Of a stretch of DNA of 33,806 nt, positions 2,662 to 33,806 are shown piece by piece. The position numbers and the translations under genes were made by a program. The notes under the pieces are model-generated. The model saw only the letters and a program-made list of their open reading frames with translations. It searched no databases and was not told the DNA's origin. Numbering within the stretch: position 1 is the stretch's first letter; each line of letters opens with the position of its first letter. The stretch is from Selaginella moellendorffii (Eukaryota > Plantae > Lycopodiophyta), in NCBI RefSeq assembly GCF_000143415.4, contig NW_003314293.1, forward strand, positions 1,806,774 to 1,840,579. The letters are read 5' to 3'.

Positions 2662-3830
2662 GTAAGTTTGCAAAACTCATGGAGTTTGGGGGGTTTTTTA
2701 TTGAGCACGTATGGGGAAATTGAATGTGGTGACCAATGTTTTATCTGATGTTCATTATGTGATAGAGCTACATATACAATTTTGTCATCATTTGAGGAAA
2801 ATGGCTAGCAAATTTGGGCCACTTAGTTGAGCATCCTCAGGTTCAAGATGTTGAGGTGGTCTCTTTGTGAGCCCAAATGAAAGCCCCTTTCTCATTAGTA
2901 GATGGAATTTTCTACTACAATGGCTATAGATATTTACTTGTAAGCTCCACTTCACTCAGCCTAGTATTATTCAAACTCAAGGACGTTTAGCTCTAAGTAT
3001 CCCAAGACCTTTAACCGATTGGAAAAGGGGGTGCACTCTTATTCATGGGCTCTTTCCATATTTGAACCCTTATGGATCGTCTTTCAAGTTGTTCCCTTTG
3101 GTTGTTTATATTATTATAGATGGATATATTAATTAATCAGGTTTAATTCCATTATTATAATTGTCTAGAGGCTGGCCATTTTGGGGGGAAAGACACATGA
3201 GCTGATTAAGTGTTATGAAGGTTAATATCCTTAGGTATTGCAAATCATATAATCTTTATTAGTAAGTAAAAGTGCAACATGAGAAGTTGAAGGGACTTTT
3301 ACACCTTTTGCCTATTCCTTAGAGTTGGTATAGTATTTCTATGGACTTCATCACTTTTTTGCCACGAACATAAAGACAAAAGGAGTAAGTATAGGTTATA
3401 ATGGATTAAGTGACAAAGTATGTGTGATTATTAGCTCTTTAGAAAATTGTTACTACCTTAAATTTAGTTGCAGGTTACTTGGAAAAAACTTTTTTGAATT
3501 ATAGGACAAGTGATTGATAATTAAAATTCACTAGTGGATTTTAGAAGAGCTTTGTGAAAGTTATACAAGTGACTTTGAAACTATTGAGTGGAGATCATCC
3601 TCAAATAGGTAGCAAGTTGGGCATATGAATCAAGTGGTGGAGGATATGCTTGCTATAACATTCGTTAAAGCAAAGATAATGGGATTTATATCTTATATTG
3701 ATGCAATCCATTACAATAATAACCAATATAGTGGAATTAAACTAAGTCTTTACTTTGCCATATTTGGGAGACATCTTCAATCAACATTGGAGTTAGGATT
3801 GCATTTAAGCAAGGATATTGTAGCATATAT
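2662..3830 (+). mobile_element. Decayed Ty3/gypsy pol fragment (RNase H end to integrase core), element C family
   Basis: Colinear with element C pol: KLMEFGxFxIEH, APFSLVDGIxYYNG, EAGHFGG, LLSGDHPQ, NQVVEDML. Many stops and frameshifts. Confidence 0.9.
2939..3110 (+). mobile_element. 172-bp solo LTR of a small (TRIM-like) element inserted in the old pol fragment
   Basis: Absent from the homologous site of element C. Begins TGTAAGC and ends GTTTATA (decayed GCTTACA). Flanked by near-identical 5-mers TTACT/TTATT (TSD). A related copy lies at 4062-4170. Confidence 0.75.
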
Positions 3831-4061
3831 AGTTTTCACCATTTATGATTTACTATAAGATAACCCACGTATCTAAGGGCAATGGAGTGAAACCCATATT
3901 TCAAGGCCTTAAGCCACTAACTGAAATGACAGAGCCAAACTCCTAAACATACAGCTAAAGAGTAAATGAATCAAAGCACAAAACAACTCTTGAGTGTTTA
4001 TCCCAATGAGTAAAAGGACAAAAGCACAAAGTAACATAGGAACAATTCTAAAGCATCCAAT

Positions 4062-4170
4062 TGTAAGCAACTAAAAAGAACAATTCAAAAGATGATCTAT
4101 AGAGCCCATGAATAAGGGATAGTTGGGGTTAAGTGTGCTTAGGTTTAAGTAATATTAGGTTGGGCGACCT
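4062..4170 (-). mobile_element. Second, partly deleted copy of the same short LTR, inverted
   Basis: Reverse complement shares CCTAxTATTAxTxAAAC, TTATTCATGGGCTCT and the 3' end TTGTTCxxTTTxGTTGCTTACA with 2939-3110. Confidence 0.65.
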
Positions 4171-4364
4171 CCATAAAAATAATGCTTAAACACCCCCATC
4201 ATCAACCAATTAAATGTGGTGTAAATAACCAAAGAGTATTTGACTCTAAAAACAATTTATAAAAGTTTAAATATAAAGAAAAAGGGCCTAAAAACAAGAG
4301 TGCTAGGATATTTATAGTTAAATGTCTTTAGGTTTAGGAAGTCCATGTAGCATCAACATTTTAT

Positions 4365-5519
4365 CCTTTACTATCTTTTTATTTTTAAGCTATAGACAAT
4401 TAATCTTGTAATGTTTAAGTTCACCACAAAGATGACAACTTTGTCTATAATTTTTTATAAAAAATTTTTACTTCTTTTTTACATCCAAAGTAGTCACCAC
4501 AAACTTTAAATTATGATGTTTATTCCTATCCTTATGTCCACAATGATCATCATGATAATTCTCAATAGCTTGAATGTTTGCAAGATTTGTGCTTATCATT
4601 ATCAAGTTGACGAGCCACATTAAAAAGCTCTTCCAAATTCTTTATAGGTTGAAAATGACACAAGTGCTACCATATGCTCTTATTGTGAAGGCCATTAATG
4701 AAGTAAGATTTATTTTAATTTGGATTTTCATTAAAACATAGCTAATCAAGTAAGTAAACTTTTCAATATAATCTCTGAGTATCATTTTTCCTTACTGGAA
4801 ATGTCAAAGTTCTATATAAGGATTCTCCATGTTATAGTAAAATGTAAATGTAAATTCATCTATATTAGACATTAATGGTTTTTTATCCGTAACATAAGAC
4901 TCCTCAAACCAAATCCACAATAAAAACTCTACACATAAAATTACTAGAATAGCCACTAAAGCTTTTGCATCTAGAGTTCTTCTAGCAGCCAAAAATTTCT
5001 TCACATTAACTAGCCAAACCAAACACTTGTCCATGCCACCATTACTAGAAAAAGTTGGAATCTTAAGTTGATCCACCAAAGAAGTCTTATTTGGAGTACA
5101 ACCACGTGCAACCTCGAGTGCCTCAACATGATAAGCATCATGTTATACATCTCGTCTTATATGGAGTTTTTGATTTTGATTAAAGGCTTGTAACTCATGA
5201 ATAACATATAGATAATTTAAACCTTTGCACCTCTATTAACACCATCATTGGCACCACCATCAACATTAAGATTTGAATGTTCCATCTTCGTTAACCATCA
5301 CAATCAACTCTTTTAATACCAATGTTATAACTTAAAGACAAAAAGTTTCACTATACTACACCTCTTTTAAGATTCTTTACCCCTAAAATTACTTCAAAAA
5401 CTCCACTATGCTACTAGAGTCCTTAGGATAAATTTACTTTTACTTTTAAGTCTATGCGTTAATATTTCAAACTTCTCTTTGACCCACGTTGACCACGGAG
5501 TCAAAGTTGGTGCTTAACA
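4365..5519 (-). mobile_element. Old 5' portion of a C-family element: 5' LTR (5323-5519), decayed PBS and gag
   Basis: LTR TGTTAT...GGTGCTTAACA is homologous to 19030-19262. TAATACCAA is a decayed TGATACCAA PBS. Gag peptide VDQLKIPTFSSNGGMDKCLVWL matches C gag VDRLKIPTFSGDGGVDECLAWL. Confidence 0.9.
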
Positions 5520-5530
5520 ATCATGCATTA

Positions 5531-5640
5531 GAGCATATGAATTTGTTTTAATTTTTCTCTTGTTGCTGCCTTCTAGGCTGTATTTTTCTTTGGAATTTCG
5601 TATTTGTTGGAATACATAGCCATATTAGTGTTTTCGTGTA
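5531..5640 (+). repeat. Diverged direct repeat, copy 1 (copy 2 at 8141-8277)
   Basis: GAGCxTATGAAT...TTTTTCTCTTGTTG...CTTTGGAATTTCGTATTT(T)GTTGGAATACAT...TATTAGTGTTTTxGTGTA occurs at both sites, with one internal indel of about 20-25 bp. Confidence 0.85.
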
Positions 5641-5641
5641 A

Positions 5642-6600
5642 GAGGATCAATGAGGCGTTCGATCAAAGCCAGGGAAAGAATGTGGTGTCCTGGAATGTAG
5701 TTCTAGCGGCATATGCCCAGGCAGGACTGGATGTTGGGGTGTTGGAGCTCTTGGATTCGATTGATGTGGAGCTGAATGTGCTCATCTGTGTGCCACTCTC
5801 TGGGATCTTGCTGTAGGGCTGCGGCTCCACGATTGCCCAGGAGCTGGAATCCGAGAGCACGGCCGTTATTGGTTGATCAGCGCTAGCATGCATGCGCCAG
5901 TGTGGGAGCTGGGGTCGCGCAAAGCGTCCTAAGGAAGGACAATCTGGGGAACGCAATGATTTCCCCGGCTTTGCAGTTCAATTGGCTGGATCTGGTGCTG
6001 GATCTCCTCTCTCCTGGAGACGGTGCACATTCACGCTTGCGGAGATCTTCAAGCTCATGGAATTTGGCGGCAAGGCTGTACTTCCACCCTGATCGATGGG
6101 ATGATGACGGAGGCCAGGGCGCGGATTGATGGACGATGCCATTCGATCGAGCCGAGAGACTTTCTTCTCTGTCAACTCACCACTCGTTGTAATGTTTTCA
6201 TATCGAGATCACTCTTTTTTGTCCTCAATCGCAAACAGCCGGTCTATTTCCCCGAATGTTTCTCTGACCTGGAGATTTGAAGCCGCCGGGCACTATCTAT
6301 CTAGGCGGAGATCAACAACAGAATGATGCCACGGAATGCACTCCAACCTGTTGCATTGAAGTGCAACTTAAGCATAGCAACGCCACCATTATGCCGAGAG
6401 TGGAGACTGTGAAGTGGTCGGACGTCGAGGGCCTTGCTCCGAATTGAGTGACTTATCTGGCAGCGATCAAAGCGCTTGAGGAAAGCTTGTCAAGCTCCGA
6501 GCTGTGAGGAGCGGACATATTCGTGGCCAGCTGCTCTGGAATCTGGAACACTTTGAGATGGTAATCTGGATGTAATTTGAGCTGGTCTGCATCTACTAGA
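5642..6600 (+). pseudogene. PLS-class pentatricopeptide-repeat (PPR) gene remnant
   Basis: RINEAFDQSQGKNVVSWNVVLAAYAQAG...VLELLDSIDVE resembles the plant PPR motif (FD.M..+NVVSWN.M+AAYAQ.G...AL.LF..M). Downstream frames are broken and the 3' limit is uncertain. Confidence 0.6.
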
Positions 6601-6671: not shown

Positions 6672-7750
6672 CTATTTATAATAGTTTATTCTTCTTCCAA
6701 ACAAGCCTTGTATCGATCTGTTGTTATCACCCTGTACACAGAATGTTAGAAGCTGTATAGCGCATGAATTAATTCTTACATTGAGGGCATTCATCAAAAG
6801 CCGGTACTGGGTTTTCGAGATCGTTCGTGGCTGCAACATCAGAACCATGGTCAGCGGAAAAGAAACAAAAGATTAAGGAAATAATTTGTTTACTCTTCTC
6901 AACACGCTCCATGTCACTTGCTCGGTGCAGGGCGGTGATGTCAGTGATCCAACATATCTGAAGAATCGCTTGCCTCCAACATTGAGCAGCGAGGGATCCA
7001 CCACTTGAACATCTTGCTCGCCACTCAGCTCAGGTAGAAAATGCTCAACCTTACAAAAAACGACAGTGAAAAAAACTCTCAGAAATCACAAAGAAAACCC
7101 AGATCTCTATTTACCTGATCGATAAAAGGGTCGTCCTCGGATCCAATCGTGTACATGACGGCGACGACTGCAAGCCTGTTGTCTTCACTCCTGTGGACGA
7201 GATGCCCCTCGACTGCGAGATGCTTCCCATTCACAGTGTGCTCGCTGGGAGCATGGATATGATACTCGCTCACCCTGTACAAGGTGCCATCGATGATGAG
7301 CGATCCCGATGAAGAATCGCCAAACTCGAGCTATTGCACAAACAGAGAAGAAAAACGAGGGGCCCGAGCCATGATTAGATGGAGATCTTTCGGAGATGAG
7401 ATGGATTCAGGAGATACATACTGCTATGTCGTGGTCGAGATTGGTGAGAGTGGCATTCGTTGGTTTGTATCTCGTCTGGAGCAGCTTCAAAGAGCACACT
7501 GGTTGGAGCTCCTCGGATTGAATGTCCACCGGAGATTGCATTCTGCCGCTGCTGCAAGCCCTCCATTCTTGTCTCAAGTTTCCCCAGTTTGCCTGGCCTC
7601 GAGTCCCATTCGAGTAGTCATACTCCTCGGCTAAGAAAAGAAAACAAGATATGATCGATTGATTTCGCTTGAAAACTATATACCTGCTTGTGCGATGATC
7701 ATGGCTTGTGCAAAAACGAACAGCAATAGTATGAGATTGGTTCTCTCCAT
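6672..7750 (-). CDS. Secreted alpha-carbonic anhydrase, 252 aa, 6 exons: 7750-7684, 7630-7422, 7330-7115, 7049-6894, 6830-6780, 6731-6672
   Basis: Manual splicing at GT-AG introns (53, 91, 65, 63, 48 nt) gives an uninterrupted 759-nt CDS. Signal-peptide-like MERTNLILLLFVFAQAMIIAQA; WGNLRQEWRACSSGRMQSPVDI; Zn-ligand motifs YHIHAPSEH and EGHLVH; YVGSLTSPPCTEQVTW; C-terminal NNRSIQGLFGR. Confidence 0.95.
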
Positions 7751-12210: not shown

Positions 12211-13334
12211 ACTAAGTCTTTGCTTAAGTAGAGTTGTTTGTAATTGTTGTGGACTTGTTTTGTGGACAACGTGAGTTGTATTGGTTTCATTGGTAGTTAA
12301 TTCCAGCATGGTGTGCTTGGCTTGCATATACGCTATACTTGGTTCTTGATATTTTCTCAATTTGCTGAGATTAACTATTTGAATTTCTTCATCATCGAGT
12401 GTCGCTAAATGAGTTGTGCCAGGTGTTTGCATACTTGTGATCTTAAATGGTCCTTCCCATTGATGTACCAATTTGCCTCCGATTTTGTCAACATTTCCTC
12501 TATACTATAGAACAAAATTTCCAACTTCAAATCTATCAGTTTTCTTTTTAGTCTGTTTTCTATTGTGATAAGCTTTTCTCCTTGCTTATATGGCTTCAAT
12601 TGTCCATAAAGCATATAATCTTTCTTCATCTAACTTTTCTAGTATAACCAATCTTTTCTTGATTAATTCTTCTTAATTAATTTGCAGCTGAATTGCCATT
12701 CTCAAGGATGGTACAGTATATTTTAGTGGTGTCAAAGCTTCAAGTCCATAAGCTAATTTGAATAGAGTTGAATTTGTTGAAACTTTATATGCTATTCTAT
12801 AAGCCCAAAGAGAATCATAAACTCTATTATCCCAATCTTTAAGATTGGTTTGCATTATTTTCTTCAATATATTTTTGAGTGTTTTGTTTGTGGATTTGGC
12901 TTGGCTGTTGCCTTGTGGATAATATGGTGTAGATTTCTTAGGTTTGATGAAGAATTTATCTAGTAAAATCTTGATTGTTTCATTAAGGAAATGTGTTCTT
13001 CTATCCGTTACTATTTCTCGAGGTAATCCATATCTTGTGATAATCATTTCATAAAGAAACTTTGCTGTATTTTTTGCTATCGCTTTCTTGAGTGGTTGGG
13101 CTTTTGCCCATTTTGTCATATAATCTGTTGCCACCAAAATATATTGATTTCTATTTCTGCTCTTTTGTATGGGTCCTACAAAATCTAGGCCCCATCTTGG
13201 AAAGGTTCCATTGCTATAGTCAGATTCAATTCTTGTGTTTGTTTCTTGGGTGGAAATTGTGTATGCTGACAAATATCACAAGTTTGACAAAACTGTTAAG
13301 TGTTTTTCCATAATGTAGGCCACCATAGGCCTAT
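12085..13334 (-). pseudogene. Element A integrase (disrupted)
   Basis: ORFs 12673-13272, 12405-12629 and 12085-12471. LWWPTLW...CQTCDICQ at the right end continues the HHCC domain begun at 25708-25911. Confidence 0.9.
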
Positions 13335-13999
13335 TGTAAGCCACAAATTTTTCTTTTCTAATTTGCCAGCTTACCTCGTCTATCCGTCCAACACTGCCTT
13401 GGTTTTTGCTAAGTTCCTTCGCCAAGGTTCCCGCCTATGGTACTAGCTCCTACTTGGTTCTACTTGGTTTTAGCTACTCACTGCATGAGCAACAGAGCGC
13501 TAGCCATCCATCCACAGATTCCCAAATCTCTCCCAATCCCCCTCCCTGGGTTAGATTGGACTTAAGGTTCGGCTACACTCCCCGCAGGCACAAACAACCA
13601 AGCACACCAAGCCTCCAGGTTCTTGGTACCACAAGACTTGATCATGGGACCCTCTAAATCCCAAGTCTTGGGTGCAACACTTGCTTCAGGACGCCAGGGC
13701 GAAACACCATGGCCTAACGGCTCGGTATGGGTACCTCTACCCCACCACTTCCATCCCGAAGGAAGGCCCAAGCCCCTAGGAAGGGCGAGGACCAATGAGC
13801 CACATGATACTCAAGTGGGGCACCACTCCACATGAGCTAGGACCACCGCAGTCGGTTTCCCTTTCAGGAGTGGGAGTTGCTCTTGAGCACTTCCTGGGGT
13901 GGCCCCTCTGGCACCACCCAAGTCCCTGCTCACTCCCACCCAAGGTCCCTTGGCCCCAGTCTCAACCTCAAGTCAGTTTAGAAGCACCATGAAGAGTTC

Positions 14000-14099
14000 N
14001 NNNNNNNNNNNNNNNNNNNNNNNNNNNNNNNNNNNNNNNNNNNNNNNNNNNNNNNNNNNNNNNNNNNNNNNNNNNNNNNNNNNNNNNNNNNNNNNNNNN
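14000..14099. other. Assembly gap (100 N)
   Basis: Run of N. The flanks match the sister LTR, where the equivalent stretch is 25246-25328 (83 bp). Confidence 0.99.
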
Positions 14100-14132
14100 T
14101 TTGGGCTTTTACCCGTTGACCCGTAGTAATAT

Positions 14133-14365
14133 TCAGACTTGATCTCGAACCCGACTTCGAACTCGTTCTCGGACTCGATCTTGGACCTGATCTCGGACTC
14201 GACTTCGGACTCGACCTCGGACTTAGTCTCGGACCCAATTTGGATCTCGGACTCTGTCTCGAACTCGGTCTCGAACTCGGTCTCCGATTCGGCCTCAGAC
14301 TCGATCCCGGACTCTATCTCGAACTTGGTCTCAGAGTCGGTTTTGGACTCGATCTTCGACTCGAT
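14133..14365. repeat. CpG-rich 6/12-bp-period tandem array (GACTCGATCTCG-like) in B LTR
   Basis: Visible periodicity; the same array occurs at 25359-25618 and, inverted, at 26474-26768. Confidence 0.9.
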
Positions 14366-14672
14366 TGTTATGATCCGGTGCAAAAAGACAAAGATTTAGT
14401 TGCCCTAGACTATGCTACGCCACCTCTTGAGGTTCCTCACCACCCAACCACCCCCGAGCTACCTCAAAAGCTCCACTGCGCCGCCGCTCCACTGTGAGCC
14501 CTAGGGTAGGTTAAATCCCTTACCCTAACATGCCTTAATACACCCTTGAGCCTCCCTTTGACCGATGTTGACCACGTAGTCAAAGCTGGTGCCTAACAAT
14601 TCTTCCCCCCCAACAAAGTCCTTGTCCCAAGGATGAGTTGTACCAGTGATCACCCTTTCTGGGGAATCCTGC

Positions 14673-17600
14673 TCAATCTCTTGGTCCATCTTCCACAGCC
14701 AAATACATCAAGGAGGCATTGGGCCCGCCACTCTGAGATAGTACACCTTTCAACTGGCTGACATAAAATACCGGATGAATTTTCACCCCAGTTGGCAGCC
14801 ACACCCGATAAGCCACTTTACCAATGCGCTCCAGCACTTCATATGGACCAACATATCGATGGGAGAGTTTATCACTCTTCCCTGTCCGTAAAGGCACCAA
14901 AGTGTTCCATCGCTCACTTGACGGAAAGATCACTCGCACAAAGATGAGATCACCCACCTTATATTCCCGGAATTGGTGATGCTCATTGGCAAACTTCTCC
15001 ACTCTATCCTGAGCTGCTTGCAAATTCCGTTTGCACACCACCAGAATCTCATCAAGTTTTGTGGCTAGATCAGTTGCCTCGGAATCAAGCTTATCTTAAA
15101 CGTCCTTATTCAAATGTAATCCCAACTCCACCGCTGTTCGAGGATGCCTTCCAAACATGGCAAAGTAAGGACTTAGCTTGGTTCCACTGTGTTGACTATT
15201 GTTGTAAGAAAATTGCACCAACGGAAGATATAGATCCCACTGTCCTTGCTTTTGACCAATGCTACAACGTAGCATATCCTCCACCACCTGATTTACACAC
15301 TCAGTTTGCCCATCCGTCTGAGGATGATCTCCACTCAAGAGTTTCAAAGTCACTTGTATAGCCTTTGCAAAACTTTTCCAAAATCCACTGGTGAACTTTG
15401 AATTTCAATCACTAATGATGTCCTCTGGCAAACCAAAATCAGGAAAAACCTTCTCCAAGTAAACCGCAGCCAAGTCTGAGGTAGTGACAGTTTTCCGAAG
15501 AGCCAACAACCGCACATACTTCGTCAACCGATCCACTATGACCCATACTTGCTCCTTTTGCCTCTGTGTTCATGGCAAACAAGTGATGAAATCCATAGAG
15601 ATACTATATCAACGGCTCTGAGGAATAGGTAAAAGTTGCAAAAGTCCCCCCGGCTTCTCCCATGGCACCTTAACCCACTGACAAAGCTTGCATGATTTAC
15701 AATACTTGAGGATATTAGCCTTCATATTCCTCCAATAAAAGTTGCGCTTAATCAACTCATATGTCTTCTTCCCCCCCAAAATGACCGGCCTCTGGACGAT
15801 CATGATAATGGAATAAAACTTGAGTAATTAACACATCCACCTGTGGCAAATATACACGGCCATTGTAGTAGAGAATCCCATCCACCAATGAGAAAGGGGC
15901 TTCCATCTGGGCTCGCAAAGAGACCACCTCAGCATCCTGAGCCTGAGCATGCTCAACCAACTGCCCAAACTCGCTGACCACCTTACTCAAATGATGACAA
16001 AATCGTGTTCGTAACGTCGTCACATGACGAACACGAGATAAAGCATCCGCCACCACATTTGATTTTCCCGAACGATGCTCAATAAGAAACTCCCCAAACT
16101 CCATGAGTTTGACCATCCAACGAGCTTGCCTAGTGTTCAACTCCTTCTGTGTGAAGAGATACACAAGTGGTTTGTGATCTGTCAACACCACGAACACTGC
16201 ACCATAAAGATAGTGCCGCCATGTCCGCAAAGCATGAACAATAGAGAGTAACTCTTGCTCATATGTGGAATAGCATTGCTCCGTGGAATTCAAAGTTCGA
16301 CTCTCATATGCAATAAGCTGTCCCTCTTGCATGAGAACTCCTCCCAGTGCATAACCACTCGCATCGCATGTCACCTCGTAAGGTTTCGATGGATCAGCAA
16401 TGCGAAGCACTAGAGTCTCGCTCAACAATCGTTTCAGCGCCACAAAACTCTCCTCTTGTGGCTTCTTCCACTTGAATGGCACATTCTTGCATAACAATCG
16501 CGTCAAAGGAATAGCCACCTCTGCAAACTTATGCTGGAAACGTCGGTAGTAACTAGCCATACCAAGAAAACTGCGCAACTCAACCACTGTAGTCGGTGTA
16601 GGCCAGTTTTCCACCACAGCCACCTTCCTTGGATCCATCTTGACACCCTTAGATGTCACAATATGGCTTAGATATTCCACCTTCGACTTTGCAAATTCAC
16701 ATTTGCTCTTCTTTGCATAAAGTTTGCTGTCGCGAAGTAACAAAAGAACCTTGCGCAAATGCACCCTATGCGCCTCCATATTCTTGCTAAAAACAAGAAT
16801 ATCGTCCAAGAAAATCTCCACAAACTCATGAAGATAACGCCTAAATACCTCCGTCATCAACCGAGTAAATGTGGCCGGTGCATTCATCAAATCAAACGGC
16901 ATAACTGTAAACTCAAAATGTCCGAAGCTTGTGTTGAATGCCGTCTTGGAGATAGATGCATCATCCATTGCAATCTGATGATATCCACTCCTCAGATCAA
17001 TCTTGGTAAACACTTGTGCTTCACCAAGCTTGTCCAGGATATCATCCACACGTGGCATCGGCATCTTATCCTTCATTGTCTTCTTGTTTAAAGCGCGGTA
17101 GTCAATACACATTCGCATTGAACTGTCCTTCTTCTTCATAAGCAAGACCGGAGCACCAAACGGAGACTTACTTGGTTGAATAAATCCAAACTCAAGTAAC
17201 TCCTTGACTTGTCGTTGAACTTCTTGCTCCTCCGCATAACTTAACCGAAATGGACGTCGGTAAATTGGCCGCGTCCCCGGCTCCAATGTAATCCCATGCT
17301 CCACACCTCGTAATGGAGGCAATCCATGAGGAAGTTCAGCTGGAAAAACATTAGAAAACTCATCAAGTACATCCCGTACTGCTGCTTCTCCCCCACACAT
17401 GCCTTGGTCCCCCAAGTCACGAACAAACAGCAAGTAACTTGAAAGTGCTTTTCCATTACGACAAGCCCGCTTCAAAGATGTAGCAGAGAGCATAACAACT
17501 GGTGGTTGAACGCCCTCGCCAAACCACACATCTTTAACGCCACCATACTCTAGCGAGATACGCTTAATGCTCCACTTTATCTCTGGATCCACCTTCACCA

Positions 17601-19015
17601 ACCATGGCATCTCAAGAATGAGATCCACACGATGGATATCTGCGAGATAAAAAGTCTCCACAAGTGTGGTTTTGCCAACCAACACTTCCAGCCCCTCAAC
17701 ATAAGCATCGAAATGCTAAGCAGAGGTAGCTGCACCTTCCACTGTGTATGGAAGAACTCCATGTGTGTTCAGGCGATGCTCCGCAACAAACTTTGCCGAA
17801 ACAAAGTTGTCATCGCTCCCACTATCCAGTAAAATCCGCACTGGATCGCCACGGAACATGCCCTCCAGCATTAAAGCTGATTCATGCGTATCCTCGAGCT
17901 CCATCTTGTTCCACACATAGTTGAGTTGACGAGCAACGATCGAAAGTCTCTTCCTCCGACCGGAATGGTTGTTCTCGTCATCCTCACGCTGTAAAGCTTG
18001 CAACTTTTTAGTATCTGACTTACTGTGAGAAGATGATTGGCCATTCTTCTTGTCCTGCTGCTTGTTCTTCAACTGCGGACAATCAGCCTTGTAATGTCCA
18101 AGTTCGCCGCAATGATGACAACTCTGTCTATAATTCTTCACAAAGAACTTTTGCGTCTTGGACCCCTTTGCATCTGAAGTAGTCACCACTGACTTCAACT
18201 TGTGATGCTTGTTCCCATCCTTGTGTCCACGGCGATCATCACGACGATTCTCGACAGAAGGACTCTGCGAACGCTTGCGAGACTTGTGCTTGTCATTGTC
18301 AAGTCGACGAGCCGCATCAAAGAGCTCCTCCAAACTCTTTGTAGGCTGAGAATGACGCAAGTGTTGCCACATGCTCTCACTATGTAGGCCATCAATGAAG
18401 TAGGACTTGTTTTGATCTGGATCTTTCGTTGGAACACAACTAATCAAGCGAGTAAGCTTCTCAATATAATCCCCAAGTGTCATTTTCCCTTGCTGGAAAT
18501 GGCGAAGTTCTGTACGAGCATTCTCCACGTCGTAATAAGGGGCAAAACGTAAAAGGAAAGCAGCCTCAAACTCATCCATGGTAGACACTAGTGGTTTCTT
18601 ATCCGCAACACAGGACTCCTCAAGCCAATTCCACCATCAAAGACCTGCATCATGCAAAACCATTGGAATAGCCACTAAAGCCTTTGCATCTGGAGTTCCT
18701 CTAACAGCCAAGAACTTCTTCACATTGGCTAGCCAAGCGAGACACTCGTCCACACCACCATCACCGGAAAAGGTTGGAATCTTGAGTCGATCTACCAAAG
18801 AAGGCTTACTTGGAGCGCTGTCCAGCCTCGAGTGCCTCAACACGCCCACGCATGGTATCCATCATGCCATGCATCTCATCTTGCATCTCTTGCTGATTTC
18901 GATTAAGGGCTCGCAGCTCATGAACCACATCTTGAATGCTCCAAATCTCTACAGTTTCATCGGCACCATCGACAATAGGATTCCAGCGTTCAGCTTGGTC
19001 GGCCATCGCAACCAA
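14673..19015 (-). pseudogene. Element C gag-pol (few stops and frameshifts)
   Basis: CHHCGELGHYKADC knuckle; LLDSGSD protease; RT with DLRSGYHQ and FLDD; RNase H TCDASG...ADALSR; integrase HPQTDGQTE and YVGPY. Confidence 0.95.
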
Positions 19016-19016
19016 T

Positions 19017-19028
19017 CCTCTGATACCA
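19017..19028 (-). promoter_or_regulatory. Primer-binding site (tRNA-iMet type) of element C
   Basis: TGGTATCAGAGG immediately inside the 5' LTR. Confidence 0.9.
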
Positions 19029-20135
19029 ATGTTATGATCCGGCGCAAAAAGACAAAGATCTAGTTGCCCTAGACTATGTTATGCCACCTCTTGAGGTTCC
19101 TCACCACCCAACCACCCCCGAGCTACCTCAAAAGCTCCATTGTGCCACTGCTCCACTGTGAGCCCTAGGGTAGGTTAAGTCCCTTACCCTAACATGCCTT
19201 AATATACCCTTGAGCCTCCCTTTGACCGACGTTGACCACGTAGTCAAAGCTGGCGCCTAACATCGGTCCCATCTGATGAACTCTTTGTCATTTTGGTCAT
19301 GCTTTTGGGGATCCTTTAGCCTACGACTCCTTAAAGAGTTGGTTCCTTACAATTCCACCATCCATAGAAGAAGTTCGATGCCCACACCAAACGTCTCTTT
19401 TTTATCCTACGACTTGTTGACCATGTCTCCAGGGGCATCCCCCCACTTAGCGGTGTGCCTAAGTTAGCCTCCCCAACCAAGAGCCCATGACAACAGAATA
19501 TAGGTGTCCCTATACTCCTCACCTCACCATGCCCTAGTATGGGGTCGGGACTTGAACCCAGCCTTGCTTTACTAGGGGGTTGGGACTCGAACCCAACCTC
19601 CATAGAATATGTCTACGGATTCGACATCCTCGCAGGGAGTCAGGCATAGTTCCCTACACCTGGTTGACCTAGCTAACCCATGCTAATTAGCTTACCTTCG
19701 GCACGCCTTCGGGTCCCAACATATGCCATTGCTCAACTTCACAAATTGATACTTTAATTGAACTTTGCATAAGTACATAGAGTTCTACTTTGCAGAAATT
19801 CCTCCATTAGATCTCGCGCGTTCGCTAGGTTCTCCTCCGGTTCCCATGTTGCTTCGCAGTGTGGAAATCCTTTCCACTTCACATGGAACTCTCTCACCTC
19901 GTGTCCTTGTCGCTTGCTTTTGCACGCATTGAGGATGGCCTTAACTTCGTATTCCTCTTTCCCTTGGATAACCTCAGGTAAAGGTCTTACTTGGTCCTTG
20001 CAAAGCGGATCCTCAAAATACGGCTTGAGTAAGTTCACGTGGAACACGGGGTGCATCTTCCCCATCTCTTGAGGAAGTCGGAGACGGTAAGCCACTTTAC
20101 CGATTTGAGCCTCAATCTCATAAGGCCCCGCGAAC

Positions 20136-20187
20136 CTGCTTAAGGAACTCAAGATTAATTCATTTACAGGAATACATGCACTTTTAC
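20136..20187 (-). other. Putative 52-nt spliceosomal intron in element B integrase (GPY/F region)
   Basis: CAAAG|GTAAAAGTGC...AATTAATCTTGAGTTCCTTAAGCAG|GTTCGCG; removal restores KLTQR-FAGPY in frame. Confidence 0.8.
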
Positions 20188-20605
20188 CTTTGGGTCAACT
20201 TCTGATTGATCCCACTTGGTAGCCTAAGGTTCTTGGTGTTCAGCCACACCTTCTCCCCAACTTGGAATGCTACATCTTGGCACTTCTAGTTTGCGTACTT
20301 GGTTTGCTTTTGTTAAGCCTGTTCCAAGGAATCCCTCACTAGATTCCAAATGTTGAGTCTTTCTGCCGTGAATGCCTCCACTGCAGGTAACTCTCCATGA
20401 TACTCGGCCACGCCGAGTTCCACAGGACCTTCAATAGCTCGCCCATTGATGACTTCCCATGGACTCACCCTGATGCTCGAATGTGGTGAGTTGTTATAAC
20501 ACATTTCTGCAAGTCCTAAATGACTTACCCAATCGGTCTGGTCTCCCGAGACATAGCATCGCAAATAATCCTCCAGCTGCCTATTCACCCTTTCCGTTTG
20601 TCCGT

Positions 20606-20652
20606 CTGTTAAGAAGTGTTAGTGCCATCAAACTTGACTTAATACCCATTAC
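20606..20652 (-). other. Putative 47-nt spliceosomal intron in element B integrase catalytic core
   Basis: ATAG|GTAATGGG...GGCACTAACACTTCTTAACAG|ACGGA with a CACTAAC branch-point consensus; removal restores AYHPQI-DGQTERVN in frame. Confidence 0.85.
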
Positions 20653-20976
20653 CTATCTGTGGGTGATAGGCTGTGTTGAATTTCAACTTGGTGCGATACT
20701 GTTCCAAGAGTGTTCTCCAGAACCTACTGGTGAAGATCTTATCTCAATCTGAGATAATTTTTTCTGGCCTTCCCCGCACTCGAACCACTTGTTTAAAGAA
20801 TAGCTTTGCCACACCTTCCGCATCCACTTCCATTGTGGTGGGTATGAAATGTGCCATCTTCGAAAATCGATCCACCATCACGAATATCGCATTGAACCCC
20901 TCGCTTGGGGGGAGTCCCGTGATGAAGTCCATCGTAAGACATTTCCACGGACGATCTGGAATTGGGATGCTTTGTA

Positions 20977-21073
20977 AAAAGGTTGCTGTCGCGCTGGATA
21001 TTGCCAACTTCAAGCTCGCTAAGTCGAAAAGCGAGCTTGAAGTTGGCGATATCCAGCGCGACAGCAACCTTTT
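20977..21073. repeat. Fold-back palindrome: 44-bp arms (1 mismatch), 9-nt loop
   Basis: 20977-21020 is the reverse complement of 21030-21073. Confidence 0.97.
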
Positions 21074-21427
21074 GGGATGATGTGCGGACCACATACGAGG
21101 ATGATGGTCTAGCACAAGAAGTGTTGCTGAAAAATCTAGAGGCACGGGAAGCTCACCAGAGAGGTGAGCTGCCAACGGAAGAGAAAACGGGCTATGCAGA
21201 ACGCAACGGACTCATATATTACAAGCAAACGAAGGTGTATGTTCCAGAAGGGGAAATAAGGAAGGTAGCCTTAGAAGAGTGTCATGACGAACCTCTTGCC
21301 GGACACGGCAGAGTGCCCAAGACAATGGGCTTACTCAAGAGGAAGTACCACTGGCCAGATATGGCTAAGGACGTCCAAGACTATGTAAAAACATGTCCAA
21401 CATGTCAGCAGGTCAAAGCCGTAACTT
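21017..21427 (+). other. Inverted segment of element B pol (RH-IN linker and integrase HHCC zinc domain)
   Basis: LSRKASL...EECHDEPLAGHGRV...YHWPDM...CPTCQQVK reads on the plus strand, while flanking pol (…GKSNIMAD and LQSIPIPDRPW) reads on the minus strand. Confidence 0.95.
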
Positions 21428-24400
21428 ATCTGCCATGATGTTGCTCTTCCCAGGCATGTACAGAATCTCGCAATCAAACTTGGCCAAAGCATTGGCCCAC
21501 CAACCTTGTTTTCCCCTTAGGTTGGGCTGTGACAAAAAGTGTTTTGTTGCTACATTGTCTATGTAAACCTTGAAGTGTCTCCCAAGTTAGTGTCACCACT
21601 CCTTGAGCATCTTGACCACCGCAAACAATTCCTTCTTATGGGTGGGCCACTTCCATTGAGCCTTGTCCAACTTCTTGGAAAAGAACGCTACTGGATGGTT
21701 GTCTTGCCTCAAAACTACGCCCAACGCAAAGTCTGGTAATGCCAACATGGGAGCCTTCCTCAACTTCCCCTTGAGGTGGACAAATGCCGCCTCGCATTCC
21801 GTTATCCATACCATCTTCTCTTTTCCCATTTGGTCTGTTAAGGGTAGGGCTACTCTCGAATAGTGTCTGATAAACTTTCGATAGTAGTTGCATAGCCCCA
21901 AGAATGCCCTTAACTCGTGTACATTTGATGGTCACTCCCAATCCTAGATCGCTTGGACCTTCTCAAGGTCCACCTTGAGCCCGTCCTTGCCCACCACATG
22001 CCCGAGAAACTTTACCTCTTGCTGAGCAAAGTCACATTTGCTCTCTTTAGCATACAGCTGGTGTTCCCTTAGTTTCTCAAACACCTTCGTCAAGTGTTTG
22101 GCATGCTCCTCTAGCATTTCACTATAGCTCAAGATGTCGTCAATATAGACGATCACAAAGTGATCCAGATAGGGTACAAAGATATGGTTCATCAATGCTA
22201 AAAATGTTGCCGGCGCATTACATAGTCCGAAGGGCATCACCAAAAACTCGAAGCTCCTATACCTTGTCCGACAGGTTGTCTTCTCGACATCTTCCTCTAC
22301 TACCCTGATCTGGTAGTATCCTGACCTTAGGTCAATCCTCGAGAAGTATTTTGTCTTTCCCAATCTATTGAACAGGTCCTCAATCCTTGGCAAAGGGTAC
22401 TTGTTCTTCTTTGTATATTTGTTGAGCAACCGGTAGTCTATACACATGCGCATAAATCCATCTTTCTTTTTCACAAATAGCACCAGTGCCCCATACGGTG
22501 ACTTGCTCAACCTAACATACCTTTTGTCCACCAACTCCTTTAGTTGGCACTTGAGCTCCGCGAGTTCTTTTTCGTTCAAACGATAGGGGGGACAAATCAC
22601 TGCCTCGGCACCCTCGACAAGCTCAATCTTATGTTCTATTGATCGTGCGGGGGGGCAACCCCGCCGGTAGCTCCTCCGGCATGATATCCTGGAATTGGTC
22701 CAACACCCGCTGGATCACTAAAGGTACTTCTTCCGTTCCTGTCTTTTTGTCACTCCTCACCGAGATTAAGCACAAAAATGCAGCCTTGGTCCCTTTAGTG
22801 AGTTGTCCTCTCATGGACACCAGGTTTAGGCATGAATCTTTAGCCTTGCATTGCCCTACCTTTAGATCCTGGGGCTCCACCTTGGATCTTCTTCCTTGGG
22901 CATTCGCTAGTACCACAAGGTTCCTACCTTGTCCATGCAAGATTACCACAAACCGACTGAACCAATCCATCATGAAGATCACATCAAATCCCGCCATGTT
23001 TAACACGATGAAATCCATGTCTACTTTCCAAGTCTCTACTTCGACTCTCGTTTGTCGAAGTACCTTATCGGTGCTTTGGCTACCTTGAACAAACTCTATA
23101 GTCCTTGGTTGGCCCAGCCGCTACACCGTTAGTCGGGCTTGCCGGACTATGTCTGCAGCCACAAAATTATCTGAAGCACCCATGTCAATAAAAATCTTAA
23201 CAAAGCTACCTCCGAGCTTCCCTCGGAAGGCTAGTAGATATCGCGAATGACTCTCTACTAAAATTGCTCGTGTAATAAGTAACTTTGAGCTAGGGACTGG
23301 ATCACATACATCAGTTTGGACTTCACCCGACTTAATGGCTATATTGGCTCTGGCCTTCTTCGGGTAGGGACATTCCCTCGAAAAGTGTTCCCCTTCACCG
23401 CAGTTGTAACATACGTTGTTTCCCAAGCTGCTAAATGACTTGACCTTTTTATTCGTGGGTTTGTCTCTTTTTGCTTGACTCCCCCACGTACTTGCTCGCT
23501 AACCTCCAAATTTGCCTTTTCGGAACCCCAAGGACTCATTCTTAGAGAAACTCTTCTTGAATTTCCCTTTGTTATATGTTCCCCTTGGTTTAGCCCCTTT
23601 GCTAAACATGGACCCCGACCTCGTCGTGTTCCCCTTTTGCAAGTTATCGTTGAAATGCACCTTGATAGCCGCATCCAACTCTTCTTTGTAATTGGTTGGG
23701 TTCCAACGCATCACCTCGCCGCAAGCCTAGGTTTGCAAGCCCAATATGAAGGCATGGAACGCATCCATATCCCTCATGTCCATGACAAGTATCCTCTTTG
23801 CCATAAACCCATTCACATACTCCTGAATGGTTTCAGTCTGTTTCAGCCTACTCAGCTCGTCTCTTAGATGCAGAGTAGCATTCAGAGGAACGTAAGTCGC
23901 ACGGATCCTCACTTTCATCATGTCCCAAGTGGCCACTGGTCCTTCGTTGGCCTCTGTCATTCTCCACCAAGACTTGGCATTATCTGCCAAGTATAGTTTT
24001 GCACATGGGACCTTCTCCGAGCTCGGTAACCACAACGCTCGGAAGTAGTCCTCCATATCATAAAACCAATCCTCCACCACCTTATAGTCGTTCACTCCCT
24101 TGAAGACCGGTGGGGGCTTTGGTTTGTACTTGGGAATTGCCTGAGGGACTGATTCCACTTCAGTCTGTTCGACCTTGTTTGGTTCTGCCTCAGTCCCTAC
24201 TGAAGGGTCCGCACCTTCTGCGCTACCAGCATCCGCAGTCTTTTGCTTTTTCTTCCGCTTTTCGTCACGCTTTAGCTTGCGTACGAGAGTCTCCAGCAGG
24301 GCATTGGTTTGTGCCAATTGTCCTTCTAGAATGTCCAATCGAGCCTTGGACGACTGCACCTCGCCACCGGACTCCTGTTTGGAAGTTTCCTCACTGGAGT

Positions 24401-24553
24401 TCTCCTCATGCAAGGATTCCTCATCCATAGCCTCTTGTTCGACCGGAGGCTCCAGCTCTGGAGGAGGTTCTATCTCCGCCTTGGTTCATTTATGCCCTAC
24501 CTTTGCCATTTCCCAGCAATCCGCCTCTATCCATCGCTAGAATTGAGGAAAAG

Positions 24554-24565
24554 GCTCCGATACCA
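24554..24565 (-). promoter_or_regulatory. Primer-binding site (tRNA-iMet type) of element B
   Basis: TGGTATCGGAGC 3 nt inside the 5' LTR; one mismatch to TGGTATCAGAGC. Confidence 0.85.
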
Positions 24566-24568
24566 AAT

Positions 24569-25702
24569 TGTAAGCCATAAATTTTTCCTTTCCAATTTGC
24601 CAGCTTACCTTGTCTATCCGTCCAACACTGCCTTGGCTTTTGCTAAGTTCCCTCACCAAGGTTCCCACCTATGGTACCAGCTCCTACTTGGTCCTACTTT
24701 GTTTCAGCTACTCACTACACGAGCAACAGAGCGTTAGCCATCCATCCACGGATTCCCAAATCTCTTCCAATATCCCCTCCCCGGGTTAGACTGGACTTAA
24801 GGTTCGGCTACACTCCCTGCAGGCACAAATAGCCAAGCACACCAAGCCTCCAGGTTCCTAACACCCCTTGGTACCACAAGACTTGATCATAGGACCTTCT
24901 AAATCCCAAGTCTTGGGTGCAACACTTGCTTCGGGACGCCAGGGCGAAACACCGTGGCCTAACGGCCGGGTATGGGTACCTCTACCCCCCCACTTCCATC
25001 CCGAAGGAAAGCCCAAGCCCCTAGGAAGGGTGAGGACCAATGAGCCACATGGTACTCAAGTGGGGCACCACTCCACATGAGCCAAGACCACCACAGTCGG
25101 TTTCCCTTTCGGGAGTGGGAGCTACTCTTGAGCACTTCCTGGGGTGGCCCCTCCGGCACCACCCAAGTCCCTGCTCACTCCCACCCAAAGCCCCTCGGCC
25201 CCAGTCTCAACCTCAAGTCAGTTTGGAAGCACCACTGGAGAGTTCTTTCAAGACTGGTTCCTAGACCTCACTATCCCTACTATACTTTTGGAACCCCCTG
25301 CAGCCCCCCGCCCCTGGGAGACGCACGCTTTGGGCTTACACCCCTTGACCCGTATTAGTACTCGGACTCGGTCTCGGACTTGATCTTGGACTCGATCTTG
25401 GACCTGACTTCGGACTCGGTCTCAGACTCGATCTCGGACTCGATCTCGGACCCGATCTTGGACTCGACTTCAGACTCGACCTTGGACTCAATATTGGACC
25501 CGATTTGGATCTCGGACTCTGTCTCAAACTCAGTCTCCGATTCGGCCTCGGACTCGATCCTGGACTCTATCTCGAACTCGGTCTCAGAGTCAGTCTTGGA
25601 CTCGATCTTCGACTCGGTCCCATCCGATGAACTCTTTGTCATTTTGGTCATGCTTTCGGGGATCCTTTAGCCTACGACTTCTTAGAGAGTTGGTTCCTTA
25701 CA
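24569..25702 (-). repeat. Element B 5' LTR (1134 bp)
   Basis: TGTAAG...CTTACA termini; homologous to 13335-14365 plus 19263-19351. Confidence 0.95.
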
Positions 25703-26391
25703 CCTATTTACAATATTTTCCTTGCTGTAATTTCTTTTACAAAATGCCCTCCAGAGCAACCAGTATGGGCCTCTTCTAGTAACGTGTGTATCTCTTCTTG
25801 TGAACGTACACATCTTCTTAATATATTATCATATCCAATTCTATAGAGTCTTCCTCCAACGACTGAGTATCGTCGTGTCCTCAAGATGAATTGTTTCCTT
25901 TGATCTTGCATGGTACATAATGTGGGAACTTTTGTAGTAGTTAAATAATGAAAGATTTCTTGAAGTGTATTGTGGGTGGTAATTTTAAAAAGATGTGAAT
26001 CAGGTAAGTCATTGTTGCGGTCTTATATATTTTCTCCAGTTGTAATTTTGCTGAGATGAACAGCTTATTCGTGGTATTTGCCAGGTTTGTGAACTATTTC
26101 AAAATTGAATTCTTGTAATAACAAAAACCATCTTGTTATTTGGCCGCTAAAGATGGGTTTGTTGAGTAGATGAATCAATACTTGATGATCAATGAATATT
26201 TTGACTTTGTTGGAAAGTAAATAATGTCGGAATTTGGTCAAGGCATATATCATGCCTAAGGCTTCTTTCTCTGTAGTTGTATAATTCATTTCAGGTGGAG
26301 AAAGGCGTCAACTTGCATAATAGATGGGGTGATCACGATGATCATCTTTTCTTTGGCAAAAAATTGCTCCTAACACATAGTCAGAGGCATC
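25703..26391 (-). mobile_element. Element A, upstream part: RNase H and integrase N-terminus
   Basis: DASDYVLGAI...NYTTTEKEALGMIYALTKFRHYL...RWFLLLQEFNFEIVHKPGK; EAHTGCSGGHF. Joins 13334 across the CCTAT TSD. Confidence 0.92.
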
Positions 26392-27215
26392 TATAAGGAA
26401 CCAACTCGCCGAGGTGTTGTAGGCTAAAGGAACCCCGAAAGCATGACCAAAATGACAAAGAGTTCATCGGATGGGACCAAGTCGAAAATCGAGTCCAAGA
26501 CCGACTCTAGGACCGAGTTCAAGATAGAGTCCGGAATCGAGTCCGAGACCGACTCGGGGACCGAGTTTGAGTCCAAGTTCGAGACCGAGTTCGAGACCGA
26601 GTCCGAGATCCGAAATCGGGTCCGAGACTGAGTCCGAGGTCGAGTCCGAGGTCGGGTCCGAGATCGGGTCCGAGATCGAGTCCGAGATCGAGTCCGAACC
26701 CGAATCCGAAGTCGGATCCGAAATCGGGTCCGAAATCGGGTCCGAGATCGAGCCAGAGACTAAGTCCAAATACTAATACGGGTCAAGGGGTGAAAGCCCA
26801 AAGTGTGCGTCTCCCAGGGGGGGGGGGCGCTGCAGGGGGTTCCAAAAGTATAGTAGGGATAGTGAGGTCCAGGAACCAGTTTAGAAGGGACTCTCCAGTG
26901 GGGCTCCCAAATTGACTTAAGGTTGGGACTGGGACCGAGGGGCTTTGGGTGGGAGTGAGCATGGACTTGGTTGGTGCCGGAGGGGCCATCCAAGGAAGTG
27001 CTCAAGAGTAGCTCCCACTCCCGAAAGGGAAACCGATTGCAGTGCTCCCGGCTCATGTGGAGTGGTGCCCCACTTGAGTACCATGCAGCTCATTGGTCCT
27101 CACCCTCCCTAGGGGCTTGGGCCTTCCTTCGGGATGGAAGTGGGGGGCGAGAGGTACCCATACCGGGCCGCTAGGCCATGGTGTTTCGCCCTGGCGTCCC
27201 GAAGCAAGCGTTGCA
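26392..27215 (+). mobile_element. Third, 3'-truncated B-family LTR inserted in element A RNase H in opposite orientation
   Basis: Starts TATAAGGAACCAACTC (decayed TGTAAGGAACCAACTC). Reverse-complement homology to 24918-25702 ends abruptly at GCGTTGCA. Confidence 0.9.
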
Positions 27216-31400: not shown

Positions 31401-33137
31401 GAAATGTTTGCTATAGTGTCGGCATTAGAACATTGAAGACACTACTTGGGTGGACACACCAAAGTTTATACAAATAGTAACACACTAAGCTACTTTGCTA
31501 TGCAGCCAAAGCTTACGCCAAAGCAAACTCGTTGGCAAGAGAAGCTTGTTAGATATGATATTGAAGTCATATATAAACCTGGTAAAGACAATATTGTTCC
31601 AGATGCATTGAGTCGTCAGGCTCAGTTTTAGGCAATGTCGGCAATCAGTTTAGACTGGTTAGAGGATGTTCGGACTTCGTATGGAAATGATCTATTGGCA
31701 AAAGTAGTCTTACACCATGCGGAGTTGTTAAAGTAGAACCCTGATAGCAAAGTGGCGAAAGTTGTTAGTTGAACCAATGTGAAGCTTCACTTCTCAGTTT
31801 GGGATGGGCTTATATTCTGTAAGCAAGAAAGATTGTATCTTCCCTCTAAGGATCTATAGCAATTGTTTCTGCGGGAACATCATGATGTTCCAGCAGCGAG
31901 ACATGGTGGAAAGCGAAAGACTCTGGTTTCATTGAAAAAGGGATTTTTCTGGTCTAGTATGGAAGGTGACGTAGCGGACTATGTCCGTTCTTGCCCTATA
32001 TGCCAGCAATGTAAGTGCAAAACTGAGAAGCAGGCTGGAAAGTTGCAATGCATTCCAGCACCGGCATGGCCATTTCAAAATGTGACACTTGATTTTGTCA
32101 CTTGTTTGCTGAAGTCTAAGGGTTATGATACTTTTATGGTGGTTGTGGATCGGCTGTCTAAGATTGCACACTTTATTCCAACTGTAGAAACAGTGAATGC
32201 GAAGCAAGCAACAAAACTCTTTTTCCATGAAGTCGTGTGGGTTTGTGGTCTTCCCAAAGAGATGATCTCGGATAGAGATTCGAGGTTTACAAGAAAGTTT
32301 TGGGGTATATTATTCCAGCTGTTTGGTACTAAGTTGAAGTTTAGTATAACTTATCATCCTCAAACTGATGGGCAGACTGAATGTGTGAATGCTCAAGTTG
32401 AGGATTATCTGCGGTACTATGTCGCAGTGAACCAATGCGACTGAGTTGAGCATTTGGATACAGCAAAAATCTATTATAACAACACATTTCACAGCACTAT
32501 TGGCTATTCTCCATAGGAGATGCTACAAGGAAATGCTTGTGGGGTGCCTCAATAGATTGTTGTACCGCAATCAATGTCCAAAGTGTAGGTCCCAGACTTA
32601 TGTGAGCAGCTACGCCAAGGTTGGTCTAGAGCTATTAAGGTGATGGGCAAAGCTCAGGATAGATATCGACGTGATAAGGATTAGCATCATTGGGATGTAT
32701 CCTATCAAGTGGGAGATCAGGTGTGGCTATCTTCCAGGAACTTGAACATTAAGGGATTTTTGTCTCGGAAGCTGTTACTGAGATATGTTGGACCCTATTG
32801 GGTGTTGAAATGACTTGGTGATGTATCCTATTAGTTGGATATTTCACAAGAGATGTCTAGACTTCATGATGTGTTTCATGTCAGTTTACTGGCCCAATAT
32901 CATGAGGATCCTGGCTGCTCTAGGGATGTTCGTCCAGCTCCAAATGTTATTGATGGTGAACCGGAGTATGAGGTTGAGACTATTCTTTTGTCTCATAAGT
33001 CACGTGGTGGTCGAACCAAGGAATATTTAGTTAAGTGGAAAGGTTACCCATCTTGCGAATCAACTTGGGAGCTTTTTAGGAATCTTACACATGCTCGTGA
33101 GCTTGTCATGGAGTATGAGAATCTTAATAAAGACTAG
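28480..33137 (+). pseudogene. Element D: degenerate chromovirus gag-pol related to element B
   Basis: Gag KPPNFKGIRDYKVLEDWVYDMENYF (compare B: KPPPVFKGVNDYKVVEDWFYDMEDYF); CFHCGESGHRSSKC; MIDTEAT; YIDD; CDASG; YHPQTDGQTE; chromodomain EYEVETIL...YLVKWKGYPSCESTWE. Many stops. Confidence 0.93.
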
Positions 33138-33732
33138 TTTTATAACTCATGTAATAAATCTTGCAAATCAATAAAGTAATATGTTTTTATAAATCAAACA
33201 TTTCATTTTTTTTGTTCGTTAGTACTTTGGTCAGTTTTGGCAAGCTGACTTTGGCACTTCGGTGCATGGGTCCAATCCATAACCATGGGGATAACTATTA
33301 TAAACTAATCACAAGTCCCTACCTCTCTCTCAATGACTCATTTTTGAAAAGGGGCATGGTCGTGTAAACAACTTAATCTGCTAGTTTATAATAGTTGTCT
33401 AAATCTTCCTGACAGGGTTGATTTTTTACTCAGGGGAAGTTCGGTTTTGGCCTTCTCCCTATGTTCCTGCGGGTAGGGATGTATCATTCCTTTGTAACCC
33501 GAGTGGCACTTGGAGTAGCAAGGGTGGCTAACTCCGTTAGTAATTTCTTTGTCGGCGACGGCCAGAGGGTGTCTGAGTCTTGACGTCTTTAGACGTAGAG
33601 GAGAGGTCGTTCCATAACTTATTTAAGTTGGTGTGTTTCCCATATAGTGTGCTTTCTGTTAACTTTCGGAGTTGTTTTCTTGATGGTCTACTAGACTCAA
33701 GTATACATTAACGAGGACGTCAATATTCCCAC

Positions 33733-33806
33733 AGGGGGGCGGGGGGGGGGGGAGTGTCGCAAATGTGACTTTAAGTATTGAAAATACTTGTGGCCAGTCC
33801 TACAGA
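33733..33806 (+). mobile_element. Polypurine tract and start of element D 3' LTR (TG at 33755)
   Basis: AGGGGGGCGGGGGGGGGGGGAG immediately followed by TGTCGC, about 600 bp after the chromodomain stop. Confidence 0.75.

Follow-up and report, generated by a model that had tools for sequence, protein, structure and literature searches.

In the 33,806-nt stretch of Selaginella moellendorffii DNA analyzed here (the window), the integrase gene of an LTR retrotransposon, element B, is interrupted by two short inserts. We consider it probable, at roughly 0.8 for this explanation taken as a whole, that both inserts are genuine U2-type spliceosomal introns that are part of the retrotransposon family. 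Retroelements should lose any introns when processed RNA is reverse-transcribed. Here, a very successful family keeps two host-like introns in its integrase, within the regions for catalysis and targeting, and its spliced and unspliced RNAs would thereby hold separate, obligatory roles. A first-pass annotation of the sequence had put forward an interpretation of this kind, and it is supported overall by the evidence below; splicing may in addition be a switch, or the introns a form of host-gene mimicry, as that annotation conjectured.

Element B lies on the minus strand (Table 1) and belongs to the chromoviruses (Ty3/gypsy, Metaviridae), a group of LTR retrotransposons. Pfam searches gave the domain order gag-PR-RT-RNaseH-IN on that strand, with a chromodomain (PF00385, E 7.7e-15) downstream of the SH3_Tf2-1 module, and the internal sequence is ~5.2 kb long. 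The earlier description of element B as a retrotransposed copy held up, as the LTR pair, the PBS and a CCTAT duplication on both sides were all found. The PBS, TGGTATCGGAGC, differs at one position from the usual form of the plant tRNA-iMet PBS, the type to which it presumably belongs. The family B LTR holds long arrays of 12-nt tandem repeats (14088-14411, 25329-25676 and 26470-26795), and a 100-N assembly gap in the element B LTR (14000-14099) adjoins repeats of this kind. A third partial LTR of family B, in inverted orientation (26394-27215), adjoins the element.

Table 1. Coordinates of element B, its parts and the neighboring host gene, numbered from the first letter of the window.
Feature	Position	Strand	Evidence or remarks
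5' LTR of element B, TG...CA, with 12-nt tandem repeats	24569-25702	-	direct repeats, self-BLAST, ends read
PBS TGGTATCGGAGC, after the 5' LTR	24554-24565	-	read in sequence
gag (Retrotrans_gag)	23730-24485	-	Pfam
CCHC knuckle, downstream of gag	23124-23498	-	Pfam
Protease, reverse transcriptase and RNase H	21596-23120	-	Pfam RVP_2, RVT_1, RT_RNaseH; frames
Integrase H2C2 zinc-finger segment, inverted	21017-21426	+	Pfam Integrase_H2C2
Integrase exon 1 part, core with both Asp, end ...YHPQI	20653-20980	-	Pfam rve, translation
Intron 1, 47 nt, phase 1	20606-20652	-	sequence; DNA contigs crossing; exact removal in X19 contig
Integrase exon 2, DGQTERVN ... KLTQR	20188-20605	-	translation, frames
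Intron 2, 52 nt, phase 2	20136-20187	-	sequence; DNA contigs crossing; exact removal in X19 contig
Integrase exon 3, SH3_Tf2-1 / GPY-F module and chromodomain	19757-20135	-	Pfam PF24626, PF00385
Integrase stop codon	19754-19756	-	after exon 3
3' LTR of element B, first part	19263-19351	-	self-BLAST
Nested element C, interrupting the 3' LTR of element B	14366-19262	-	self-BLAST, repeats
3' LTR of element B, remainder	13335-14365	-	self-BLAST, repeats, ends read
Target site duplication CCTAT, 5 bp	25703-25707 and 13330-13334		read in sequence
alpha-Carbonic anhydrase gene	about 6700-7650	-	introns of 63 nt (6831-6893) and 48 nt (6732-6779)

The two inserts had been reported as GT...CAG segments of 47 and 52 nt; their coordinates proved exact (Table 1), and the observation is confirmed. 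Read on the minus strand, intron 1 has the form AG/GTAATG...CACTAAC...AACAG/AC and intron 2 the form AG/GTAAAA...TTAAT...AAGCAG/G. Their GC contents are 0.36 and 0.33, respectively, against 0.46-0.48 in the flanking coding sequence. Both show the features of U2-type introns: they begin with GT and end with AG, have a YTRAY branch site 10-40 nt upstream of their 3' end, and match host introns in size. The integrase frame passes from 1 to 0 and back to 1 across introns 1 and 2, and skipping both gives YHPQI/DGQTERVN and KLTQR/FAGPY; precise removal thus restores the conserved motifs and regains the frame, as had been claimed. The likeness in size to introns of the neighboring carbonic anhydrase gene was also borne out (63 and 48 nt there, 47 and 52 nt here). 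The 48-nt intron of that gene and intron 1 share a CTAAC branch site, and the element B introns look like host introns in both size and signals. With respect to the idea that they might be introners, a search of the window for further copies of intron 1 or 2 returned only chance matches of 9-14 nt.

To place the introns in the wider family, the region 19600-21700 was compared with four sequencing runs at 85% likeness. In X1, a set of DNA contigs from the same species, 20553 contigs match this region. Summed word depth in X1 is 0.70-0.96 million in the bins that hold the introns, compared with 0.29-1.1 million in the other integrase bins, and there is no dip at either intron. Many of these contigs differ from element B by single letters inside the introns (93 contigs at position 20610, and 73 at 20156 and 20181), which indicates that many independent copies hold both introns. 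Seventeen contigs break off at 20182, and their loose ends resemble the interior of intron 2 with several differences. A second run, X4, is labelled as another organism and also covers both introns; its contigs are at least 99% identical to element B and for this reason it was not counted as an independent species. Among the variants listed and the best 15 of 48 joints, X1 and X4 showed no form that skips 47 or 52 nt. The weakest joint listed has a depth of ~150 relative to ~1e6 for the family, so a handful of intronless copies may exist. These data show that introns 1 and 2 are carried in DNA by essentially the whole of a very high-copy family.

The same data bear on the possibility that the element B copy acquired the inserts after integration, as filler DNA or as small insertions. 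This copy is indeed old (its LTR segments are 92-95% identical by BLAST) and carries a private inversion and stop codons, as such an origin might lead one to expect. However, depth is undiminished over both inserts in X1 and X4, and dozens of contigs cross them with single-position differences inside. The question of whether an insert is private to one copy is answered in the negative by the same X1 depth and by the 73-93 contigs that cross intron positions. A copy-specific insertion of both segments is ruled out by the family-wide DNA depth, and we regard filler DNA as having next to no likelihood.

The removal of both introns from RNA was assessed with X19, a set of contigs from a different study whose label, 'RNA?', is a guess and whose size, 26 Mb, is that of a transcriptome. 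Two X19 contigs fall on 19600-21700, and neither has intron sequence. One of them, record 9 (1083 nt, depth 9.4), aligns to 19797-20137, 20207-20608 and 20656-20974, and these blocks are ungapped in the record. A letter-level check of the junction between exon 3 and exon 2 showed a direct join with a net loss of 52 nt; the 17 unaligned letters at this first join are bases from the end of exon 2 that have diverged from element B. At the junction between exon 2 and exon 1, the same check showed that 47 nt are removed, and the 3-nt offset of the alignment there arises because the contig letter differs from element B at 20655, so that three letters from the end of the intron can take the place of the final three of the exon. 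Both exon-exon junctions predicted by the first-pass annotation are present to the letter in a contig of a run whose RNA nature we infer.

An alternative view of this contig is that it is DNA of a rare intronless retrocopy, so that it would record past splicing and not current transcripts. The guessed RNA kind of X19 leaves room for this, as does the fact that the joints listed for the DNA runs are the best 15 of 48. On the other hand, X19 has two contigs and no intron-bearing form, whereas the 20553 contigs of X1 are overwhelmingly intron-bearing. Since the DNA of the species is dominated by intron-bearing contigs and X19 has none, a genomic DNA source is very unlikely for X19, and its transcriptome-like size points the same way. 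Furthermore, if such an intronless retrocopy existed, it would be proof in itself that splicing had once taken place at exactly these positions. We therefore hold the retrocopy explanation to be very improbable and continue to read the contig as spliced RNA of the family. In the raw RNA run X21, the number of junction reads was 0; 1.38 Gb held 6 family reads, one of them on intron 2. With 6 reads only, the family is almost silent in the X21 sample, and no splicing ratio can be derived from it.

The position of the introns would have direct consequences for the integrase protein. The Glu of DGQTE lies exactly 35 residues after the Asp of the ISD motif, giving D,D35E spacing. Intron 1 falls between the second Asp and this Glu, four codons ahead of the catalytic Glu, and reading through it ends the frame after four codons. 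Intron 2 lies directly ahead of the GPY/F motif, and reading through it ends the frame immediately (AGG TAA). It follows from the sequence that unspliced RNA would give Gag-PR-RT-RNaseH plus a truncated integrase in which the catalytic Glu, the GPY/F-SH3 module and the chromodomain are all missing. An RNA that keeps intron 2 alone would give the whole catalytic core without the SH3-like module and the chromodomain, and full integrase would be encoded by doubly spliced RNA only.

The copy of element B in the window is an old, dead family member whose 3' LTR is split by element C, and its heavy decay went unmentioned in the first-pass annotation. Ten in-frame stops lie on its coding path, including one in exon 1 (20744-20746) and two in exon 2 (20313-20315 and 20286-20288), and in-frame stops also occur within the PR-RT-RNaseH region (21596-23120). 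There is also a 1-nt frameshift near 22700, at the PR-RT boundary. A third intron was considered for this change of frame and ruled out; it is a 1-nt indel within the GLPP motif. A 410-bp inversion has placed the zinc-finger segment (21017-21426) on the opposite strand. In contigs of X1, X4 and X19, position 21017 is joined to 21428 and position 20981 to 21426, each time with a change of strand, and these joins in three runs indicate that the inversion is private to this copy. A 44-nt inverted duplication, 98% complementary (20977-21020 and 21030-21073), is found at one of the inversion breakpoints, and the inversion looks like a repair or template-switch rearrangement that followed insertion. 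Compared with the X1 family majority over 19600-21700, element B showed 51 A>G and 49 T>C differences, with 39 C>T and 24 G>A, and it mostly has A/T where the majority has G/C. This bias is consistent with a silenced, methylated copy decaying through C-to-T changes, and all ten stops are in keeping with it.

We also compared element B with related sequences. In the window, element D (plus strand, 31600-33806) and element C (minus strand) have an integrase that is uninterrupted at both intron sites; both read straight through, as had been stated. By self-BLAST, these two elements share no more than ~65% nucleotide identity with element B. A search with exon 3 found two more distant relatives, on metagenome contigs (L003 and L004), whose integrase is continuous at both sites. 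Taken together, the lack of introns in L003, L004, C and D indicates that the introns are derived in the element B family or in a small group of families. A further sequence (P0028), on a 1.5-kb contig from a library of unrecorded type, has a continuous frame, which carries no information on the introns. When the exon 2 piece was compared with 1.84 billion representative proteins, no match exceeded 48% identity. The short exon 2 protein matches all have an uninterrupted HPQTDGQTE, and these are therefore not intron-split fragments. A word-based search with exon 2 gave no match, and the family has no entry in the protein collections searched. A search with gag found one Logan contig, L002 (ERR10900155_11727), from a related family at ~77% nucleotide identity and without integrase; it holds two shortened copies of that family, head to head.

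These observations provide a model for how the family might propagate. Since the intron-bearing copies have LTRs and target site duplications, the RNA from which they were reverse-transcribed must have retained both introns. In the model, unspliced RNA would be the packaged genome, and doubly spliced RNA would be the mRNA for the full polyprotein. The proposal that spliced RNA is the sole source of full integrase, with unspliced RNA as the genome, is thus upheld, as it follows from the DNA copies together with the sequence. By splitting transcripts into mRNA and genome, splicing may set the amount of integrase. Some bias would have to bar spliced RNA from particles or from being copied back, or else the introns would favor their carriers. 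Introns are known from plant transgenes to aid export and to shield from RNA silencing. An advantage of this sort, through better export or protection from RNA silencing, could keep intronless derivatives down.

The main rival to this model is that the inserts were passed down in a defective, non-autonomous lineage mobilized in trans by other elements, in which they are intron-like and incidentally spliced but have no role in the life cycle. The copy examined is dead and no intact one was verified; the intron-free chromoviruses D and C in the same genome could supply integrase; and the near silence of the family in X21 is also compatible with such a lineage. However, D and C are distant from element B in nucleotide sequence, and integrases normally require their own LTR ends. 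Both inserts have complete splice signals, and frame and motifs are regained exactly once they are taken out; two such accidents, each independent of the other, are unlikely. In addition, the copies that bear introns are essentially all of a very high-copy family. Based on these considerations, we judge a non-autonomous origin to be unlikely, although less so than the other alternatives weighed above, and favor introns that belong to the family and separate its mRNA from its genome.

We further speculate, tentatively and at less than even odds, that the introns are positively maintained as a mark of RNA fate, such that doubly spliced RNA is translated and alone yields active integrase with a chromodomain, and RNA unspliced at both sites is the sole packaged genome. 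The introns might form or gate a packaging signal, or splicing might shield the mRNA from RNA silencing. If this is true, the conflict between mRNA and genome would be solved in a way undescribed for LTR elements. The family could serve as a natural system for asking how retroelement RNA is shared between translation and packaging, and why intronless derivatives, which would be expected to be self-sufficient, fail to take over. It also has a practical side, as annotation pipelines that expect a single open pol frame would score such elements as defective.

A search of the full-text literature, in which journal coverage is incomplete, yielded no account of an LTR element whose integrase contains small introns. 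Such introns therefore seem to be undescribed so far, which is not proof of novelty, and intron-bearing LTR elements as such are already known from Ogre. According to a 2025 review, plant LTR elements are generally intronless, with Ogre and EVADE as notable exceptions (PMC12786077). Ogre, from the Tat lineage of Ty3/gypsy in legumes, is described in the work cited there as having a pol intron that a fraction of the transcripts lose by splicing (Steinbauerova et al. 2008, cited in PMC12786077). As far as that secondary account goes, Ogre is the nearest analogue, with an intron-interrupted polyprotein in its genomic copies, downstream pol domains that need splicing and an unspliced template. Ogre has one intron, which is larger and separates protease from RT, and the element itself is giant and lacks a chromodomain. 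In contrast, element B has two introns of 47-52 nt in the integrase of an ordinary-size chromovirus and has no intron at the PR-RT boundary.

Other elements use splicing in different ways. Drosophila copia makes a spliced subgenomic gag mRNA. The same is true of the plant Ty1/copia elements EVADE and BARE1 (PMC12786077). As in element B, host splicing in these elements yields a second RNA species and sets a protein ratio while the genome stays unspliced. However, in EVADE, BARE and copia a large coding part of pol is spliced out, so that the resulting mRNA has gag only, and complete Gag-Pol is still encoded by the unspliced RNA, whereas splicing in element B completes pol, and the 47 and 52 nt remove no coding domain within the 19600-21700 region covered. 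Retroviruses and Cer1 of C. elegans make spliced env or CERV mRNAs alongside unspliced genomic RNA (PMC10309623). They resemble element B in that splice sites are kept in the genome and intron-containing RNA is exported and packaged, but their introns span gag-pol, splicing serves to reach a downstream gene, and the pol frame is unbroken.

Retained introns are also known outside the LTR elements. Penelope-like elements retain introns, according to work that we know through later citations (Arkhipova et al. 2003, cited in PMC3846280 and PMC4209133). On these accounts, their genomic copies hold spliceosomal introns like those of element B, but the elements are of another class, with target-primed reverse transcription and a GIY-YIG endonuclease and without LTRs or integrase. 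The Ginger and GingerRoot DNA transposons have a gypsy-like integrase gene with introns (PMC2836005, PMC6839031). They resemble element B in that GT-AG introns interrupt a DDE integrase gene of gypsy type. These transposons move by cut-and-paste and have terminal inverted repeats, so that intron retention is expected of them; the integrase of element B, in contrast, forms one unit with RT-RNaseH in an element that has LTRs and a PBS.

Several minor features of the window were also recorded. The LTRs of element C measure 233 bp (14366-14598 and 19030-19262) and are 95% identical, and the element has open frames of 642 and 290 aa. AT-rich remnants at 2673-5328 (GC ~0.30-0.33) have 73-81% identity to element C and seem to be what is left, in degraded form, of an older copy of that family. 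The carbonic anhydrase fragment is nearest to streptophyte clusters and thus points to a green-plant host, whose introns in this gene are very short, and a PPR-like reading frame (5577-5813) lies near that gene.
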